Below are positions 1-47,506 of a stretch of DNA of 64,000 nt, in pieces. Made by a program: the position numbers and the translations under genes. The notes under the pieces were generated by a model, which saw nothing but the letters and a program-made list of their open reading frames with translations, searched no databases and was not told where the DNA came from. The stretch is from Blastocladiella emersonii ATCC 22665 (Eukaryota > Fungi > Blastocladiomycota), in NCBI GenBank assembly GCA_025594325.1, contig JANHCV010000002.1, positions 620,001 to 684,000 on the forward strand, given 5' to 3'. Position 1 is the stretch's first letter, and every line of letters starts with the position of its first letter.

Positions 1-708
1 ATTCCTTTTATCGCGAGGTGGGCGAGTTCTACTTCGAGACCATTCTCCGGACTGCCGATCGGGTCATCGTTACCTTTCTAGGCGAGCTTATCGAGGACCT
101 GGCGGAGGACTACGTCGTGAATCTCGATTTCGACCCGTGGGAGGACGCCATGCGGCGACTTCGTCCTGGTGCTACACGGCGCGAGCGACGCAAGGCCGAG
201 GAGGACGCAGAGCGGGAGCTCGTTGATCACGTCAGGCGCCAGCTCACCCGCGACATCGAGTTCTGCCTTGAGCAAGCTTCAGACAAGGATCGCCCACTCC
301 AAATCGTTAGCGCCGGCGGCCATCGGCGCCATCAAGTCGCTCGACGTGCAGCGGGTTGAGGCGTGGCTCCGCGCTGGCATCGCTCTTGGACTCGAAAAGT
401 GGGACACGGTGCTCCGCGTCAAGGACCACTTTCTTAAGCCCGAGCACGTGTGGACGCTGGAACCGGCGGACGAATCGGGGGCGAACACCACTCGCCGCCG
501 TCGCTGGTTTGTCGGCCCAATTTTCGCGATCGAGGGCAAGTTTTGCATCTTTGGCTACGAGGGCGGGGTCCGGCCGACCGACGACACATTCATTCTTCCA
601 CCCGAGGACCTCCAAGCGATCGTTGCCCGCATTGACGAGTGGCGCGCGCACGAGGACCAGCTCTCGCAGCAGCTCAAGTCCCTGTCGATTCGGTCGCGGC
701 GCCGCTAG
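1..708 (+). pseudogene. Copy 1 of an unnamed paralog family, 5'-incomplete at the window edge, with an internal deletion and frameshift near 300-320
   Basis: Frame +3 from base 3 reads SFYREVGEFYFETILRTADRVIVTFLGELIEDL, matching copy 3 (TLYRELAEHYFGIDTANAARVSKGFLPYLAEDL). After about 310, frame +1 reads APAAIGAIKSLDVQRVEAWLRAGIALGLEKWDTVL...FLKPEHVW, matching copy 2 (PPAPIERIRAQDVDQAEAWLRASVEHGLATWDDML...FVRPKWLW). Confidence 0.7.
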
Positions 709-846
709 CGCTGTTGTTTCCTCGGCGTTCGTACCCTTGAATCGTGGTCGCCGTTAGCGATAAACGGCTTTTGTGTTGTATGCTATCAATAAATACCCAG
801 CGGAGGGAACGGGGTTGACGTCTGCTGTGAGACATGAGACGCGTCG

Positions 847-2583
847 ATGAATCATGTGAGGGATACTCCAAAATTGAAACTCCGTGAGTGGCCTCAATCG
901 AGCCACCACGATCCCATCTCTCCCCTCCGCAATCACACACCACCACGTAAACCAATGAATGACTCCGTGAAACGTGTTGGCAAGAAGCGCAGGGCGACGC
1001 TTCCGCCGTTGGATCCGCCCGCGGCGCTCGCCGGCGACGAGGTCCTTCCCACGGCGGAGGACTACCGCCGCGTCGGGACCGGCGAGCTCGTATCCGTGGT
1101 CCGATCCGCTTCGGCTTACTTCCGCAACACGATGAAGCCCGGCATCGCTGCTCGCTACACGAACAGCGCCGAGTACGGGCCGCTCTTTGACAAGCTCAAC
1201 GAGGCGGCCAAGCAGCTCCGCCACGAGGTCTCCAACGTCTTCCACCACTATCAGCGCATATTCAGCACCAAGGAGCTTGCCCTTCTCCTCGAGTCTTGGG
1301 AGCGCGTCGAGCTGACTTTCCGCGCGCTCACCGACGACTACTTTCTCACCAACTTCAATCGGGTCCAAGACCACCGCATCCGCGCCGCCATCGTTGCTCA
1401 CCTCCGTTTCGGCAACCAAGGTTCGATGTTTCGCCCACCCGGATCCGCGACCTACTTTCGCGACGTTGCCCACAACTATTTTAAAATGACGGGCGTGGCC
1501 GCTGCAAAAAATCGAGACGCGTACATTGACGAGCTTGCCGCGGCCATGACGAATCGCGAGCTTGGGCTTCCGGGTTCGGACTCTAAGGTCAGCCAGCACG
1601 AACGGAACAAGGTTTTCGATGCCAAGATTGAAGAGGTCAAGCGCATGCTCGCGCACAATTATGTCCCGAACCGGCCGCTGCTTGCCCTTGCTGCCTTCCC
1701 CACGATTCGAAAGCGCTTGATTCGCGAGGGTGTGCTTACCGAAGCCAACAAGTACCCGACGATTTTCCTCCGCAATCACGAGTTTGGCCCCTTCATCATC
1801 CTCACGTTCGATGCGTTTTGCGACCTCTTCATCATTGGCCAGCGCCCGCACCGCGAGCTTCCGCCCGTCATGCCGCTGCAGACTGACGCCGTGGCTGCGC
1901 TTATCGGGCTCAACGGCGCGCCGCCCGCGCCCATTGAACGCATCCGCGCGCAGGACGTCGATCAGGCCGAGGCGTGGCTCCGTGCCAGCGTCGAGCACGG
2001 TCTTGCAACGTGGGACGACATGCTCAGCGTGTACTACTACTTTGTCCGCCCGAAATGGCTCTGGCAGCAGCCGCTGAAAGCGCAGTCGAAGAAGGAACCG
2101 CGTCCGCTGCGTTTCGGCGCCAACTTCTTCAAGGTCTTCTACGAGAATCACCGCGTGTGCCTGTACTCTTACCAAAAGGGCGTCCCGGCCAGCGACGCGT
2201 ACCTCTCGATGCTCTCCCAAAACGACATGAAGGCTCTCACCATCCGCATCCACGAGTACTACCAGCACCAGATCCAGCTCGTGCGGCAGTTCGAGGCCAT
2301 GACCCTGCAGCAGCGAAGTCTTGGTCCTGCTTACGGACACGGTACTGGGTACTACAACGGAGTGTACTACGGACCCGACCATGGCGGTCTCGGGGCCGCC
2401 GGGACCTTTGCCTATCCGGGATACGATGCAGCCTACTACGGCGGTGATTACGATGCCCATGCGGACCAGCAGGACGCTTACTACGCACGCGAGTTCGCTC
2501 CGTCAGCAGCGCATGCGCAGCACCCGCCGTCACACGTCCCCGCGGGCGCTTCGCCTGTTCCCTGGCACTACGCGAACGAGTGA
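847..2583 (+). CDS. Intact copy 2 of the unnamed family (578 aa ORF; alternative ATG at 955), with a Gly/Tyr-rich C-terminal tail
   Basis: Long intronless ORF with globular-looking composition and clear local similarity to both neighbouring ORFs. No recognisable domain. Confidence 0.8.
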   Translation: MNHVRDTPKLKLREWPQSSHHDPISPLRNHTPPRKPMNDSVKRVGKKRRATLPPLDPPAALAGDEVLPTAEDYRRVGTGELVSVVRSASAYFRNTMKPGIAARYTNSAEYGPLFDKLNEAAKQLRHEVSNVFHHYQRIFSTKELALLLESWERVELTFRALTDDYFLTNFNRVQDHRIRAAIVAHLRFGNQGSMFRPPGSATYFRDVAHNYFKMTGVAAAKNRDAYIDELAAAMTNRELGLPGSDSKVSQHERNKVFDAKIEEVKRMLAHNYVPNRPLLALAAFPTIRKRLIREGVLTEANKYPTIFLRNHEFGPFIILTFDAFCDLFIIGQRPHRELPPVMPLQTDAVAALIGLNGAPPAPIERIRAQDVDQAEAWLRASVEHGLATWDDMLSVYYYFVRPKWLWQQPLKAQSKKEPRPLRFGANFFKVFYENHRVCLYSYQKGVPASDAYLSMLSQNDMKALTIRIHEYYQHQIQLVRQFEAMTLQQRSLGPAYGHGTGYYNGVYYGPDHGGLGAAGTFAYPGYDAAYYGGDYDAHADQQDAYYAREFAPSAAHAQHPPSHVPAGASPVPWHYANE

Positions 2584-2940
2584 TATAGTTTGGTCGCGCC
2601 GCGATCTCATGCTGAATTCTTGCAATCAATATAGCCCAGTAGTTTGAAGTGGCATCCCAAATCACGCACTCGTCCGTATCCGTGACGAAGTATTCGCATT
2701 TGCCTGTCAAGAGAGGGAGTTATTGGTGGTTAGTAAACTCAAAGTGATTGCACGAGCTGACGGCGGACGCGTCGGGAGATCATGTGAGTGTCAGCTGATC
2801 GCATCAGGCCACGATCATGATGCGTGCGGGCGCACGTTGCCTGCTAGTGCAGGATTCAGGAATGCGCGGCCTCGATGTAAGCATTTTTTCAGCTCCTTTG
2901 ACTTCTCCCTTGGCTAGTATCCGCGGCAAAATCGAATCCA

Positions 2941-4332
2941 ATGTCCGCGCCCGCCTCCGCCAAACGGCCGCGCGGCGAAGCGCGCGCCAAGGCCAGGAGA
3001 AACGAGCAGTCTATTCCAGTCGAACACCTCGTAGAGGCGGCGCAGACATGCCGGGTTGAATCTACGCGTGTCCCTCACGAATACGGTGAGTGCAACGGTC
3101 TTTATCAGCTCGCCACGTTTATCGAGTCGCAGAAGAACGTGGTCACCGTCTTTTATGCCGTCGCAAACCCCGCAATGGCAGCTGACCCTGAAAACAGCAA
3201 GGTTCGCAAACTTCGTGCAGCAGTCATTGCCTGCTGGCTCACGCACGCACCTGAACCAATTTTCTATCCTGTCGGGTCGGGCACGCTATATCGCGAGCTG
3301 GCCGAGCACTACTTCGGCATCGACACGGCAAACGCTGCCCGCGTGTCCAAAGGGTTTCTTCCGTATCTGGCCGAAGACTTGACCATCGGTGCGATCAAGC
3401 TCAAGGACAGGGTCTACCAGGACTACACACAGTAGCATGCTACGCCCGACATGACCGAGGACGAGCGTGCTATGCTCGAGCACGAGGCTGGCCAACAGCT
3501 GTACGAACAGATCAATGAGCAACTCGCTCTTGACATCAAGCGGCGCCTCGGACGCGACACCAACCGCCCGCACCAGGTTCTCGCGAGCTTGCCGGAAATC
3601 ATTGAGTCGGCCGAGTGGCAGAGGCTTCTTCCAACGGGTTATCGCAGCCCTGCGCTTCTTCCAACTGCGGACGAAATCGGCCCGCACGTTCTATTCACGC
3701 AGCAGGCACTGCTCAAGATTTTTCGTGCTAGTTTCCGCCAGACGCCGTTAGCACTGCCTCCTGCGCCGACCTCGGCCAAACCTTGTGTCACTTCTATTGC
3801 AGCTGCAGCGACAAAGTACACGGACCCAACGGTGAGTCGCGTCGGGTCAACAATCAAGCGCACAGTGATCAAAGAAATGGGGCCATCGACTCAACGTACC
3901 GGCCCAGCGACTCGACCGGGACCGCCTTCGGTCGTCACTGTCAAGGTCATCGCGCCACCGACCTTGACAAAGGCCGAACCGTGGCCTGTCCTCGCTGTCG
4001 CGCGCAAACCTGCGCCGAATCTGGTCGGAGGGCACAGTGCTCAACACGTTTCTCTTCAGCATGAATCAACGGCAATGTGCGGCCCATCAAGTGGTGAGCG
4101 CGTCGGCCCAAGCTACCCTCGTGCCGTTGCTGTCCCCGTTGGCGGCAAAATTGGGCACAACAGTACCGTGCTTGACGAGATCCCTCACTTCGGACGTATT
4201 CAGCTCAAGGACTCGGGTCCACTGGAACGGTCCAAGGAGGAGCCTGAGCCACACGATCCCAACGCTAGCTACTCGACCCCATGGCTCGACGTTGCGACGA
4301 ACACGTCCGGTCCAGGGACGGTCTCGTGCTGA
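2941..4332 (+). pseudogene. Copy 3 of the unnamed family, one reading frame interrupted by a single TAG at 3433-3435
   Basis: ORFs 2941-3435 and 3451-4332 share a frame. Similarity to the other copies is visible on both sides of the stop: KLRAAVIA...FYPVGSGTLYRELAEHYF before it, and IKRRLGRDTNRP...LASLPEII...PTADEIGPHVLFTQQALLKIF after it. Confidence 0.7.
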
Positions 4333-4562
4333 TCCTGATTTTGAATATAATGCCCGCGTTCTACTTCACTTGATGGTTGGCGATAGTCTCTCATCGTGTG
4401 CGAGACGCGTCGCGGTATCAGGTGAGTGGCGCAACGCGTGTTTTCGCCCTCTCCATCCCGCGATCGCAGCCTGCTTCGAGTTTCGTGGCACTCGTTGAGC
4501 TCTCGGATGCATCGGATAAGCTCCCCTCTCTCTCGCTGATCGCCATCTCCGCGGACTCCCCA

Positions 4563-4644
4563 TGCTGTAGGTAGCAGGACCAGAAGCCTGATGGACCAGT
4601 GAGCTGTGATGCTCGAGTGCGGGGGAGTGCTGTAGGTAGCAGGA
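4563..4644 (+). repeat. Perfect 17-bp direct repeat TGCTGTAGGTAGCAGGA (4563-4579 and 4628-4644)
   Basis: Read directly from the sequence; the two copies are separated by 48 bp. Confidence 0.9.
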
Positions 4645-5025
4645 ACGTCATGGCGGATCCGTTTTGTCCACTCTCACATCATAGCACCCCAGCGATCTTT
4701 TAGGCCAGCTCACGCGACAAGCGTGGCAAGCACGGCACTCGTTGCATTTTGACCCTCACGATCCGGCCCGGTGAGTTCATGACCGCGATGGCGAGCTGGG
4801 TGAGCGTAAGCAGCGCGGTTGGGCGAGCATTACGCCACAGCCGAGTGCCGACGGATTCTCGGCCGGCTCGCGTCATCCCGCGTGCGCACGTGCGCGCGAC
4901 CCGACGGTTTCTCGCGTCGCGTTTCGTCAGCCGGCGTGTCTCCCACTTTTCGCAGGCGGCGTTCGCCTCGCTTCGCGCGCGCGTCCCCTGACGAACGGAC
5001 GGATCGGGTGCTGCTCGCGCGAGAG

Positions 5026-5031
5026 TATAAA
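5026..5031 (+). promoter_or_regulatory. TATA box upstream of the flavodoxin-like gene
   Basis: TATAAA 90 nt upstream of the ATG at 5116, followed by a pyrimidine-rich leader. Confidence 0.55.
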
Positions 5032-5115
5032 GCGAGCCGCTCCCCGCGCTCTGCCCTCGGCCGTCCCTCACCCCAGTCTCGACTCACCTCTTGCACACCC
5101 TACGCAATCAACACC

Positions 5116-5797
5116 ATGGTTACCAAGGCCAAGATCGCCATCATCACGTACTCGACGTACGGGCACATCTTCACCCTCGCCGAGGCGGTCAAGGCGGGCG
5201 TCGAGTCGTCGGGCCACGCCGAGGCGACCATCTTCCGGGTCGCCGAGACGCTGTCCAAGGAGATCCTGGACAAGATGCACGCGCCCGAGCCCAAGGACTA
5301 CCCGGTGGCGACGGCCGAGACGCTCAAGGAGCACGACGGGTTCCTGTTCGGCTTCCCGACGCGCTTCGGGATCCTTCCCGCGCAGTTCAAGGCCTTCATG
5401 GACTCGACGGGCGGCCTGTGGAGCAGCGGCGCCCTCGCCGGCAAGCCCGTCGGCACCTTCTTCTCCACGGCCTCGCAGCACGGCGGCCAGGAGACGACGG
5501 CGCTCACGGCGCTCCCCTTTTTCGCGCACCACGGCCTGGTACCTCATCTTCTTTGCTAGCAAGCCGTGAGCGGTCGCCTAACATCCCGCGAACGCCCAGA
5601 TCTACGTCCCGCTCGGGTTCGCCAACACGCACCTGTTCGACGTGTCGGAGGTGGTCGGCGGGTCGGCGTGGGGCGCCGGCACGGTCGCGGGCGGCGACGG
5701 GTCGCGCCAGCCCTCGGACAAGGAGAAGGAGATTGCCGGCACCCAGGGCAAGGACTTTGCCACCATCGCCGCCAAGCTCAAGAACGCCGTCCTGTAA
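5116..5797 (+). CDS. Flavodoxin-like NAD(P)H:quinone oxidoreductase (WrbA/Pst2/Ycp4 family), 2 exons
   Basis: Motifs [49 protein letters not shown] and [24 protein letters not shown] intron at 5539-5599 restores the frame; TAA at 5795-5797. Confidence 0.93.
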
Positions 5798-6103
5798 GGC
5801 GTCGTGGCGCGGCGCGAGGACGTGCGCGTGGGTCTCGATCGCCTTCTCTCTCCCTCTCCCTATAGCTGCTCGTGAACACATTTACCCCCCTTTGCTCCCA
5901 ATGTCTCTCACTGGGTCGTCTGTAACGATGTTGTCGAGTCTAATCTACAATCCGCACCGCACGCGGCGCCGATGAGGTGCTCGGAGGAGCCCTTCGCGAC
6001 GAGCAGCAGCGGGGACTTGCGCGAACGCGTCGCGCCACCTCGCTCGTCTCTTCCCCTCCTCTCTGAAGCGTCCCTCACCCTGGCAACTACTCCTCTCACC
6101 ACC

Positions 6104-15800: not shown

Positions 15801-16910
15801 CGCTCGATCCACGTCACGAGGGTCTCGAGGCACTCGCGGCGCACCGCCGGGTCAATGTCGTGGTACCGGTGCCCGAACACGCCGTCGTGGATGTCCTTCA
15901 TGGCCTCCTCGACCTTGTCCTCGTGCGGGTGGCCCTCGTTGGCAATGTGGTTGCACAGGCACACACTGAGGTGCAGGGCGAGCGACGTGGCCGTGTGGCG
16001 CAGCGGGCGCGCCGTCGACGTCGACATGGGCACGATCCAGCCGAGCAGGACCGAGAAGAGCGTGCCGTCCCACAGCGCGTCGGCGTTGGTGTGCAGCAGC
16101 TGCGTGAAAAAGTTGTAGAAGGCCGACAGCGCGTCCTTGGTCGTGCGGGTCTTGGCGATCAGCGGGTACGTGGTCATGGTGCCGGCCTCCTGCTGCAGCT
16201 CCTCGATGTAGTCGGGGAAGGCGTCCTGGTCCTCGAGCTGCGCTGCGTTGATGGAGCCCTCGCAGCCTGCCGCCTGGACGATGGGCGTGCGCGTCAGCAT
16301 CACGATGAGCGACAGGGTCATGGGAAACAAGTGAGCGCACCTTAATGATCATGTTGATGACGGCGAGCAGCGCGTCGGCGGGCTGGACGTGGTACGCCGT
16401 GAGCCACTGGCGGACGACAGCGGTCATGGCGATGCGCGGCGTCTTGACGGTGCCCCACAGGTCGGTGAGGTCGAGGTCGACGACGGGCTGCTTGACGCCG
16501 CGCGCCTTGCCAGCGGCACCCGCGGCGCGGCCGCCCTTGGGCTTGGCCTTGGCCTTGGGCGCGGGCGCCTTGAACAGCGAGGCGCCGGTGCGCGCAGCGG
16601 CGGGTTTCGCGGCGGCGGGGGCCTTCTTCTTGGCGGCAGCCGCCTTCGCCTTGCCACCGCGCTTGCCCTTCTTGGGCCCGGCGGCGGCGGCGTCGTCGTC
16701 GCTCTCGCTCAGGTCGGACAGGCTGTCGTCGGCGGCCTTGCCCTCCTCCTCCTCCTCCTCGGCGTCGCTCTGGCCCTCGCCCTCGTTCTCGGACGCGGAC
16801 GAGTCGCCGGCAGCAGCGGCCGCTGCAGCGCGCGCCTCCTGGGTCTGGCGGATGCGCGTGGACCGCCTCGTGGACGGGGCGGCCGCGGCCTCGGTATCGC
16901 TTGTTGACAT
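12890..16910 (-). CDS. SCC3: Cohesin subunit Scc3/STAG (Psc3/Irr1-like), 2 exons
   Basis: STAG-domain segment WIVPMSTSTARPLRHTAT and SCD segment GVFGHRYHDIDPAVRRECLETLVTWI...YLRYFGWLLND. A GT-AG intron at 16340-16274 joins ...MIIK to AAGCEG. Confidence 0.9.
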
Positions 16911-38857: not shown

Positions 38858-39451
38858 ATGACTCTCTGCACCCCGGTCCACATCCCCGCCGTCCAGGCCC
38901 AGTCGCAGTCGCAGTCGCAGTCGCAGATGCAGTTCGGCGGCCACGGCGCCCAGCTGCAGTCGCAGTCGCAGTCCCAGTCGCAGTTCCAGGGCCACCACTC
39001 GGTCGACCAGGCCCAGTCGCAGATGCAGTCGCAGTTCGGCCACGGCTTGGGCGCGCAGCAGCAGTCGCAGGCCCAGACCCAGTGGGGCAACCACCACGGC
39101 GACGTCGCGCAGCACCAGTCGCAGTCGCAGGGCCAGTGGTCTAACGGCCACGGCGATGCTTTCCAGTCGCAGTCGCAGTTCCAGCAGGGCCACAACTCGT
39201 TCGACGGCTTCGTCGGTGGTAACCCGAACACGTGGGGTCCCGCGGGCGACCATGGCCCGATTGGCGGCAACCCGAACACGTGGGGTCCCTCGAGCGACCA
39301 CGGTCCGATCGGCGGCAACCAGAACACGTGGGGTCCCTCTGGCGAGCATGGCCCTATTGGCGGCGACCCGGCCACCTGGGGCCCCTTCGACCCTATTGGC
39401 GGCAACCCCAACACTTGGTCGCACGACACTCACTTCACGACCTTCTTCTAA
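38858..39451 (+). CDS. 197-aa low-complexity protein: (QS)n/Gly/His region, then five GGNPNTWGP-type repeats
   Basis: ATG in a CAAG ATG context with an upstream TATA box, strong codon bias, repeat units starting at 39215, 39263, 39311, 39359 and 39398. Confidence 0.8.
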   Translation: MTLCTPVHIPAVQAQSQSQSQSQMQFGGHGAQLQSQSQSQSQFQGHHSVDQAQSQMQSQFGHGLGAQQQSQAQTQWGNHHGDVAQHQSQSQGQWSNGHGDAFQSQSQFQQGHNSFDGFVGGNPNTWGPAGDHGPIGGNPNTWGPSSDHGPIGGNQNTWGPSGEHGPIGGDPATWGPFDPIGGNPNTWSHDTHFTTFF

Positions 39452-44840: not shown

Positions 44841-47506
44841 ATGGAGCGTGGCGGAACCGCCCGCAAACGCGCTGCGCCGGGCAAGTCGGCTCAGCCGGCC
44901 AAGCGCGCCAACACGGGCTCGTCATCCACCGTCGCCTCGTCGCGGACGCGGCGCGCCGGCACCATGCTCCCGCAGGCGGCCCCGCCTCCTCTGCTCCCGC
45001 AAGCGGCCATTGCCAGCCAATTAGCGCGTACCCAAAGTGACCCGCGCGCTGCGCTCCTGGACTTGCCGTTCTGCTCTACCGCGCAGACGAGAGTGGTCAG
45101 TCACGCGGTTCCTTCGCCCGAAGGTGCTTGCTTCGTGTGCCCGTACACCGACTGCGGCAAGGTACTCGACTAGCGCTGCTTGACTTGCAGCGATGGAAGT
45201 GTCTGATTCACGTCTCGCTTAGACTTTCCGCAAGCACGTCGATGATCACGGCGCAGTGGCGATGTGGGTGGCCGTCCAGGAGCACTTGGAGATTGAGCTT
45301 GAGCGCCGAAACGTCGCCGGTGCCGGTAGGGCCGAGGGCAAGCTGGGCAGTCGCGGCGCGAAGCGACCTCCTAAAAAGTACGATCATTCCATCATCCGCC
45401 GTGATCGCCCGCGCTCACACTCTGCTGGCCCATGTAGGCGAATTTGCGATCTTGTGCGCACTCTCGAGCGTCCCGCTCAACATTCCACGCCGGACGCGAG
45501 CGTTTTGCATGGTTTTGGCTTGGTAAGTCCCCTCGCTGCTGATCTATGCTCAAAGCTGACAGCATGCTCAACTCAACATCACTGCGTCGCCTTGTAGCCC
45601 TCGTCATCCGAACATGAAGGCCATGTCAATCCATTGACGGCGTCGCAATCCAAGCGGCCTGCAGCGAAGCCGCTCGCCGAGACGTCGCGCCTGAAGCGGC
45701 GACGCATCACGCTCAGCCTCGCCGATTTTCCTCGGTGCACCGCCCACCCGCAGCAGCAGGCCGCGTCCACGCCCGAAAGGTCGCGCTCGCCGCGCACCAG
45801 TCTCGCCAACTCGACGCCGCCATCACCATCGGCTTCGGCGCCTCCACCGCCGCCGGAGGAAGGGGAAGATGACGGGTGGGACCTCAGCGAGGACTCTGAG
45901 CTCGACGACCAGCTCCCCGCCAACTACCGCTCCACGTTCGAGCAGTGGAGCCCGGTTCGCGGCACTGCTTCGTCGCCCACACCGCCCGCGCCATCATCCT
46001 CATCGCCTCCGCCGCCTTCGCCCCGCATGGTGATTCGGCCGCGCGCCGTGACGCCGCCTCGCGCTTCCCCACCACCTCGCTCTTCGCCACCACCGCGCAG
46101 CTCTTCGCCGCCTCGTGCCCCATCGCCCATCGACGTACCCTCCTCACCCTCAGTCGTTGACGTTTCCTCAGCCTCACCGACTCCACCTCGTGCACCGACT
46201 CCACCTCGCGCACCTCGCGCACCGACCCCACCGCGCGCGCCGCCGCTGCCACGTGCGTCGCAGCATGTCGAGGTCATCGAGATCGACGACAGCGACGAGG
46301 AGGACGCCGCGGACGCCACGGCGCCGACTGCGCCTGGCGCGATCCCGCGGACCAGCACGCGGCCGGTCGAGGAGGTGATCGTGGAGGATAGCGACGAGGA
46401 GGAGGAGCGTGTCGACCCCCGTCGCGGACCCACGCCATCACCTCCCGCCAGCGGTTCAAGCGGGTCGTCGTCCGCATCCGTCTCGCGCGACGTTTCGCGC
46501 AACGCCGGCGGGTTTGGCGTGCGAGCTGGGTCGCCGTCGGTCCCACCTCGCGCGTCGGCCCACGCTGGTGGGTTTGGTGGGCGACGCGCGTCCGTTTCTG
46601 ACTCGCGCGACGCGTCAAGTCAGACGGGCGGATCAAGCAGGCGACGCGGGTCGACGTCATCCGGGTCGCAGGGCACGCCGTGGCACGGGCTCGGATCGAG
46701 CGGGCGACGTGGTTCAGCGTCATTCAGCTCGCACGACACGCAGCACGGCAGCGGATCGAGCGGGCGACGCGGGTCGGCGTCATTCGCCGCGAGCAGCGCG
46801 CCAAGCGGCTCGCCGCCACCTGCCTTGCGCGGCGAGTTGCTGCGCTCCCGTGAGTCAGGCGGGCGCAACGGGCCACCACCCGCCGCGAGCAGCAGCACAT
46901 CGAGCAGTCGCGGTAGCCCGCCGTCGGCTTCGCACGGCGCGTCGCGGCACGCCAGTGGCTCGAGTGGGCGGGACCTACCGCCATCCGCCGCTGCGAGCAG
47001 CAGCAGCAGCAGCGCGTCGCGGCCCGTCAGCGAGCTCGTCGTCGTCAGTGACAGCGACGAGGAGCGGGACCCGGGTCGGCGTCGAACGAGCAGCAGTCAC
47101 CCCAACGTCGTCGCGGTATCCAGCGACGAGGAGCAGGGCGCGGGTTGGCGTCCACCGAGCAGAAGCCAAGCCGAAGTCGTTGCGGTGTCCAGCGACTCGG
47201 ACAGCGGCGACGACGACATCGTGGTGGGTAACTGGGTCTCTCAGCGAGGTACGTGCTTCTGCTTCTAATCCGCGCGACGGTCCACACGATCGAGTGAGTG
47301 GAGTGTATATTGACAGTTGCGCTTGAATGTGCAATGTAGCAGCCGCGCCGCCAGCTCGCCTCCCGCCGTACATGCACGCGCCGGCCGTGATCCCCGGTAC
47401 GCGGCGCAACAGCGCCAGCACGAGAAACAGCGGCGTGTCGAGCAGCAGCAGCAGCAGGCCGCGGCCGTCAGCGACTGAGACCATCGAGATAAGTGACTCG
47501 GACTGA
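44841..47506 (+). CDS. Predicted 4-exon gene: C2H2-like finger plus a disordered region with at least 6 SIM-like motifs
   Basis: Introns 45162-45222, 45523-45597 (GTAAGT donor, GCTGAC branch, TAG acceptor) and 47249-47339 each join the frames correctly. The product contains CPYTDCGKTFRKHVDDH and ends TIEISDSD. Confidence 0.65.

Follow-up and report, generated by a model that had tools for sequence, protein, structure and literature searches.

A family of box-led paralogous genes in Blastocladiella emersonii, shaped by duplication and decay

What are the diverged, same-strand genes at the left end of a 64,000-nucleotide stretch of the Blastocladiella emersonii ATCC 22665 genome, and how has one intact copy come to lie between two broken ones? 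This stretch, positions 620,001 to 684,000 of contig JANHCV010000002.1 (2.84 Mb; assembly GCA_025594325.1), is referred to here as the window. A preliminary description of it had reported three old, intronless paralogues of an unrecognised protein family, two of them damaged, and had proposed a genetic conflict system or captured viral or element cargo. In our study, these genes were found to belong to a family whose units begin with a conserved upstream box. The descriptive core of this result, namely a restricted family, self-contained units, a shared box, and duplication together with decay, is well supported. The wider reading, that of a taxonomically restricted multigene family of B. emersonii with box-led units, birth and death of copies, co-regulation and soluble proteins, is the one that we consider probable.

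Five loci (L001 to L005), each reaching 10 kb to either side of the family representatives and together about 150 kb long, were analysed along with the window, whose position 1 corresponds to position 9047 of L001. In the genome paper, a contig named c_be_22_2, which may be JANHCV010000002.1, carries telomere repeats on both ends (PMC9730499).

The array and its family

The first 4.4 kb of the window turned out to be the right-hand portion of an array in which at least five copies follow each other on one strand. The array runs about 5 kb further left, as the preliminary description had thought possible, and the 9 kb of flank on this side hold two more copies and the start of copy 1 (L001 5210-9046). 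One of these two copies is nearly full length with two changes of frame, and the other is truncated with one in-frame stop. Within the window, the right-hand part of copy 1 (1-708, plus strand) was recognised by BLASTP, tblastn and the family profile hidden Markov model (HMM) as broken and chimeric; it has a single change of frame and is short of about 70 positions of the family profile. Its gene start (L001 8497) and its own upstream box (L001 8363) lie left of the window, which opens in the copy 1 frame with the (F/Y)YR(E/D)(V/L) motif also present in copies 2 and 3. Copy 2 (952-2583, plus strand), annotated as H9P43_002129, is intact and encodes 543 amino acids from the annotated ATG at 952, in a frame that is open from 847; its protein has a KR-rich N-terminus, a helical body, a conserved C-terminal domain and a Q/G/Y-rich tail. 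Copy 3 (2941-4332, plus strand), identified by BLASTP and the family HMM, is broken and carries a single in-frame stop. Missing from it are about 80 profile positions at the N-terminus and the entire conserved C-terminal domain, and its low-complexity tail ends in a PW motif that some intact copies also have. Copy 2 is the one working gene of the three, the units on either side of it being pseudogenes.

The relationship of the three units is well beyond chance. The broken copies were compared as separate pieces, as they stand, and the family HMM, which was used for searching only, was made from eight intact copies from outside the window. BLASTP of copy 2 (window 847-2583) matched the C-terminal piece of copy 1 with E = 8e-21 (32 % over 133 amino acids) and the two pieces of copy 3 with E = 1e-12 and E = 2e-5. 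With the family HMM, the pieces of copy 1 had E-values of 4e-13 and 5e-44, copy 2 had 3e-207, and the pieces of copy 3 had 3e-23 and 9e-9; the HMM had no match in the remaining window or on the minus strands. The motif pairs quoted in the preliminary description are present, with a spacer of 10 residues and not of 9. Its direct alignment of copy 1 with copy 3 is weak (tblastn E = 0.009, and no BLASTP match between their other pieces), but both pieces fall on one region of the HMM. The same-strand paralogy, the damage to two copies and the similarity of protein with hardly any of DNA were all borne out, and the block also stands apart in composition, with a guanine-cytosine (GC) content of 0.58-0.62 in the first 5 kb of the window versus 0.63-0.75 beyond them.

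When 1.84 billion representative proteins (clustered at 50 %) were scanned exhaustively with HMMER, with no word index and no length filter, only six proteins came up at E <= 0.001, every one of them below 1e-30. These are H9P43_002031, H9P43_002032, H9P43_002045, H9P43_002104, H9P43_002129 and H9P43_002174; all come from ATCC 22665 and all lie on contig JANHCV010000002.1, in five clusters at about 270-760 kb, that is within about 500 kb, with one strand per cluster. No Pfam family, including HET, NACHT, kinase and nuclease families, was found at E <= 0.01 in the family part of the six proteins. Scans of all members with Pfam, NCBIfam and PHROGs gave as their only match an RNA recognition motif (RRM) in the fused N-terminus of one deposited model, which belongs to a neighbouring gene. 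Sequence searches of the PDB with a single protein and with the profile gave no match, and a word-indexed protein search with copy 2 returned only its own gene, H9P43_002129, the listing being swamped by low-complexity candidates. A pattern scan of IMG/VR gave 34 pattern matches, none of which was confirmed, and a literature search found no paper on this family. The family therefore is as unrecognised as had been stated, and the profile, fold and domain searches returned no characterised housekeeping family.

Over the five loci there are at least 16 copies, 9 intact and 7 damaged, with five in L001 and the window and two to four in each of L002-L005. The nine intact copies are uninterrupted intronless open reading frames (ORFs) of 493-623 amino acids, eight of them distinct and one a duplicate of copy 2. 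Amino acid identity among intact copies is 28-51 %, except for one pair at 70 % and one at 98 %, and the proteins are conserved (HMM E-values down to 1e-236) while the coding DNA is barely alignable between most copies. Old divergence thus stands beside recent duplicates, and intact copies beside damaged ones, as expected of the birth and death that had been suggested for the array.

The family structure corrects several deposited gene models. The sequence of copy 2 is a single open frame, which fits the intronless reading, whereas the model of H9P43_002129 (P0001) splices out window 1421-1516, 96 nt bounded by GT..AG with a weak donor. The 32 residues removed in this way hold a motif kept in every other family member, and the intron call is probably wrong for this reason. 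Deposited protein P0002 (995 amino acids; L002 10001-15083) fuses two adjacent family copies, P0004 (834 amino acids; L003 10001-13873) fuses an upstream gene with an RRM and Q-rich sequence to a family copy, and in P0003 (372 amino acids; L005 10001-11481) an intron bridges the break of a damaged copy.

Selection on the intact copies was found to be purifying, as the check proposed in the preliminary description has shown. The Nei-Gojobori ratio of nonsynonymous to synonymous substitution (dN/dS) came out, for the less saturated pairs, at 0.22 (the pair of 98 % identity), 0.31 (that of 70 % identity), 0.40, 0.32 and 0.47; the most diverged pairs are saturated. Sliding windows of 60 codons over two pairs gave 0.11-0.75 and none above 1, and one pair has a hypervariable middle region with saturated dS. 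GC content at third codon positions (GC3) is 0.66-0.84 in the intact copies, a host-like bias weaker than that of their neighbours; among five neighbouring gene ranges it is 0.86-0.96 in the four that are single open frames, and 0.78 in a metacaspase range still including introns. From dN/dS and GC3 together, the intact copies are therefore taken as real, constrained and fast-evolving genes with weaker codon bias than the genes around them. Such a bias fits low or stage-limited expression, or a younger age, and by itself is no sign of foreign origin.

The proteins are probably soluble and probably nuclear or nucleic-acid-binding, since their N-termini are rich in RG, RGG or KR, their body is helical and their tails are of low complexity. 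These tails vary in length, and several end in (I/V)PW. The highest 19-residue hydropathy in the eight intact copies is 0.96-1.78, so that no membrane segment (hydrophobic 19-mer above 1.8) was found in them. In the conserved C-terminal domain, columns of W, R, D, E and G are invariant over the six members aligned. AlphaFold2, given a shallow alignment as input, predicted a mostly helical body and a C-terminal domain with a small beta-sheet and a long terminal helix, with low confidence (predicted local distance difference test score 46.6 for copy 2 residues 36-501 and 60.2 for the C-terminal domain). The structural check suggested earlier could be made on these poor models, and Foldseek against PDB and BFVD gave nothing credible from them (best E-value 0.07).

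The upstream box

A repeat search revealed a 34-nt direct repeat with seven copies in L001, 1.1-2.1 kb apart, three of them inside the window. The box of copy 2 (838-871, plus strand) holds ACGCG in a GACGCGTC palindrome, followed by CATGTG, and lies 114 nt before the annotated ATG. The box of copy 3 (2766-2799, plus strand) differs from the reference instance by one mismatch in its first 24 nt, and a third box (4404-4437, plus strand) has no family ORF behind it and is probably the remnant of a lost copy. The pattern of invariant columns has 3 matches in the window against 0.02 expected. With up to 6 mismatches allowed in 24, the box precedes 15 of the 16 copies in the five loci; the 16th has a more degenerate box (L002 22387), recognised by flank alignment. 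Apart from a further box after the last copy of several arrays, none was found elsewhere in the approximately 150 kb of the five loci.

The position and composition of the box are strongly kept. In all eight distinct intact ORFs the distance from box start to ATG is 114-170 nt. ACGCG is common to all 18 distinct instances. It belongs to GACGCGTC, an 8-bp palindrome with the MluI site ACGCGT, and 13 of the 18 have this site. CANNTG (columns 16-21) is present in 15 of 18 as CATGTG, CAGGTG or CAGCTG, and the three boxes lacking it all stand before units without an intact ORF. DNA similarity between paralogous units sets in exactly at the box, with none upstream. Several arrays have one extra box after their last copy, and the terminal box of L004 is homologous, together with its flank, to the box before a damaged L002 copy; such ORF-less boxes appear to be remnants of lost copies. 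Permissive HMM and tblastx searches found no decayed copy behind the ORF-less boxes or in the first unit (L001 4123-5209). The GTGAG of the box was also considered as a splice donor and rejected: the letters read GTGAC in three instances, of which one precedes an intact ORF, the substitutions keep CANNTG instead, and there is no conserved acceptor.

Since the box keeps a fixed distance and orientation to the ATG and decays when its ORF dies, it is read as a promoter or leader element, and would as such be shared by the family and co-regulate it. Each unit is self-contained and consists of the box (24-34 nt), some 115-170 nt of leader, an ORF for about 490-620 amino acids that has no intron, and a short 3' flank. 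The units are arranged head to tail and form five or more clusters, which together span about 500 kb of a single contig. Tandem and segmental duplication makes the family grow, and the subsequent decay of some copies makes it shrink. Its expression is probably tied to the cell cycle or to a life-cycle stage, because ACGCGT and CG(C/G)GAAA resemble fungal G1/S boxes and CANNTG resembles an E-box. We regard this likeness to G1/S sites as a lead and not as a result.

Recent duplications and competing explanations

Two recent duplications were identified. The window at 311-5814 (L001 9357-14860) is 99.8 % identical to L005 11084-16587, which lies on this contig at a distance of about 135 kb; there are 10 mismatches over 5504 nt and no gaps, and the edges are sharp on both sides. 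Besides copies 2 and 3, this 5.5-kb block contains the C-terminal part of copy 1, an ORF-less box and a flavodoxin-like gene. Copy 2 is free of mismatches, whereas copy 3, the flavodoxin-like gene and the last 17 nt have 3 each and the copy 1 part has 1. At the left edge the family HMM is continuous in L005, whereas in the window locus it jumps by about 70 profile positions. A locus of the L005 type is more likely the source and the window locus the recipient, because non-corresponding parts are joined in the latter. Copies 2 and 3, with the rest of the right 5.5 kb of the array, would thus most likely have arrived recently from a locus about 135 kb off and have cut into copy 1. The earlier view that the duplications look old is therefore only half right: it holds for copies with 28-51 % identity, but copies 2 and 3 as they now stand lie in the 99.8 % block.

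The second block joins L002 13443-15157 and L003 12232-13951 at 96.7 % over about 1.7 kb and comprises a single unit, from the first base of the box to a point about 78 nt beyond the stop codon. Its ends show neither an A-tail nor a target-site duplication. A further 2-kb segment, 87 % identical between L002 17985-19967 and L003 3374-5384, adjoins two arrays, and its ORFs have no Pfam match.

Among the other explanations, that of a genetic-conflict family, such as meiotic or spore-killing drive, toxin and antidote, or allorecognition, with copy turnover as the mark of an arms race, survives best and is still unlikely. The species restriction, the multiple copies with six representatives in one 500-kb stretch, the pseudogenes beside intact copies, the recent duplications, the hypervariable middle region and the GC content below that of the surroundings would all suit it. 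However, dN/dS is well below 1 over the whole length and in every window tested, the proteins have neither membrane segments nor a HET, NACHT, kinase or nuclease domain, and the units do not pair two different genes. To our knowledge no sexual cycle in which drive could act has been described in B. emersonii, and this was also counted against the proposal. The conflict system proposed in the preliminary description therefore fails every test applied to it, including a search for a mobile-element frame. If the family proves polymorphic between strains, it would become a candidate for a conflict role.

It is quite unlikely that the units are copy-and-paste cassettes, in which the palindromic box marks the boundary of copying, by recombination or through an intermediate of transcript length, and has only a secondary role in expression. 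The 1.7-kb block points this way, as it extends from the first base of the box to about 78 nt past the stop and so has about the size of a transcript; the similarity of older paralogous units is likewise sharp at the box, and there are arrays with one more box than ORFs. On the other side, the edges of the 5.5-kb block are off any box, one lying inside a copy and one just past the flavodoxin-like gene, and the 1.7-kb block lacks an A-tail and a target-site duplication. Lost copies, whose remnants they would be, account for the extra boxes, and decay of the box with a dead ORF is what is expected of an expression element. A bolder version, to which we give an equally small chance, would make the units selfish self-copying cassettes on one chromosome: box-started, transcript-sized modules, each with its own promoter within the copied segment, would pass from array to array, and their product would be a fast-evolving nuclear protein engaged in intragenomic conflict, for example between the nuclei of the coenocytic thallus or at sporulation.

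Capture from a virus or transposon, for instance of an Arg-rich capsid or Gag-like protein that was then domesticated and amplified, appears very unlikely. The intronless ORFs, the Arg/Gly-rich N-termini resembling those of many nucleic-acid-packaging proteins, the GC content lower than that of host genes and the lack of cellular homologues among the proteins searched are features that such an origin could produce. Nevertheless, no viral or mobile-element protein was met among the 1.84 billion representatives, PHROGs and IMG/VR were negative, and the best BFVD fold, obtained with a model of low confidence, had an E-value of 0.07. It also counts against capture that the units have neither a reverse transcriptase, an integrase or a transposase nor a long terminal repeat (LTR) or terminal inverted repeat, the sole long inverted repeat lying outside the array. 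Moreover, GC3 of 0.66-0.84 follows the host bias and the flanks are ordinary housekeeping genes. No positive evidence was thus obtained for the viral or element cargo of the preliminary description, be it by sequence, by pattern or by fold. Finally, that the copies are not genes at all, but chance ORFs or annotation artefacts, is hardly credible, for although long spurious ORFs are common in 60-70 % GC sequence and several family models are wrong (fused or over-spliced), there are nine uninterrupted ORFs with conserved protein and barely alignable DNA, dN/dS is 0.2-0.5, HMM E-values reach 1e-236, and the C-terminal domain has invariant tryptophan, arginine and aspartate columns.

The reading of a box-led, co-regulated family under birth and death is preferred to these, and several points also weigh against it. 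Close paralogues may exist on other contigs, given that the analysis covered 10 kb to either side of each representative and a collection clustered at 50 %. The edges of the 1.7-kb block could mark the box as the boundary of a copying unit, instead of or besides a promoter. The resemblance of the box to G1/S sites and to an E-box is partial, the E2F-like part having one mismatch in most instances, and promoter function, transcription start and stage specificity are predictions. The role of the proteins is drawn from their composition, the AlphaFold models being weak and without a fold match.

This study has described an orphan family well and has not demonstrated a new mechanism. B. emersonii is a model for phototaxis, and this early-diverging fungus was found to possess a protein family without a relative among about 15 billion public proteins. 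The conserved box makes co-regulation directly testable with expression data, and if it is a G1/S or stage-specific element, it would be among the few cis-elements defined in Blastocladiomycota.

The surroundings of the array hold some further features. It is bordered by two ordinary genes, a DnaJ/zuotin-like zinc-finger gene on the left and a flavodoxin-like gene of the WrbA/FMN_red type (5116-5797, plus strand; 206 amino acids) on the right, which is a neighbour and not a family member. The latter is present twice, with 3 differing positions in its L005 twin (15889-16570), because it was carried along in the 5.5-kb block. L001 2649-3931, some 5-6 kb to the left of the window, forms an inverted repeat whose two arms of 120 nt are 94 % complementary and separated by 1043 nt. 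It lies where the GC content is lower, between the DnaJ/zuotin-like gene and the first of the array's boxes, and could be a foldback element or one resembling a miniature inverted-repeat transposable element (MITE). A 224-amino-acid gene annotated on the minus strand (L001 4548-5839) overlaps with two units, namely the first one, which is domain-less, and a broken copy at its start; no Pfam family matches this gene, and the model may be spurious. GC-rich tandem repeats at 38897-39386 and 46184-47196 of the window, with periods of 27-69 nt that are all multiples of three, are probably repeat-containing coding regions of unrelated genes, and the tandem-repeat scan of the window gave nothing related to the family. 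The 64-kb window as a whole yielded neither a tRNA gene nor an Rfam family at gathering score.

Comparison with known systems

The known systems nearest to the conflict explanation share features of genome organisation with the family and differ from it in their proteins. The wtf genes of Schizosaccharomyces pombe encode multi-pass membrane proteins and are commonly flanked by LTRs, and wtf-type drivers have two overlapping transcripts from alternative starts and meiotic expression. Both families are species-restricted and multi-copy, are concentrated on one chromosome, include pseudogenes, exchange sequence between copies and share a regulatory motif. In contrast, the Blastocladiella family has no membrane segments and no LTRs, and no sequence relative of it was found outside B. 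emersonii. The Spok spore killers and the HET allorecognition genes are characterised by kinase, nuclease-like, HET or NLR domains, none of which was found by Pfam in the family part of the six proteins. Endogenous viral capsid-like genes in fungi are likewise intronless, with a basic N-terminus and without cellular homologues; the present family, however, has no viral relative by sequence, pattern or fold, and has a host-like codon bias and its own promoter-like box.

For the box, the nearest likeness is with the G1/S promoter boxes known from fungi, namely the MluI cell-cycle box (MCB), the Swi4/6 cell-cycle box (SCB) with its SBF site, and the E2F site. The published sites are ACGCGT for MCB/MBF, CGCGAA for SBF and GCGSSAAA for E2F (PMC4862756). 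ACGCG in all instances and ACGCGT in 13 of 18 are followed here by a CG(C/G)GAAA-like stretch, but an exact SBF match is present only in the box of copy 1, the E2F consensus is missed by one base in most instances, and the G1/S boxes have no counterpart to the CANNTG half of the family box.

The closest overall likeness is with birth-and-death gene families, which have the same head-to-tail arrays, old and near-identical duplicates, pseudogenes beside working copies and purifying selection on the survivors. The Blastocladiella family differs from these in having no recognisable domain or fold, in the location of its six representatives on one contig, and in a box core that is unusually well kept, in 18 of 18 instances, despite coding DNA that can barely be aligned.

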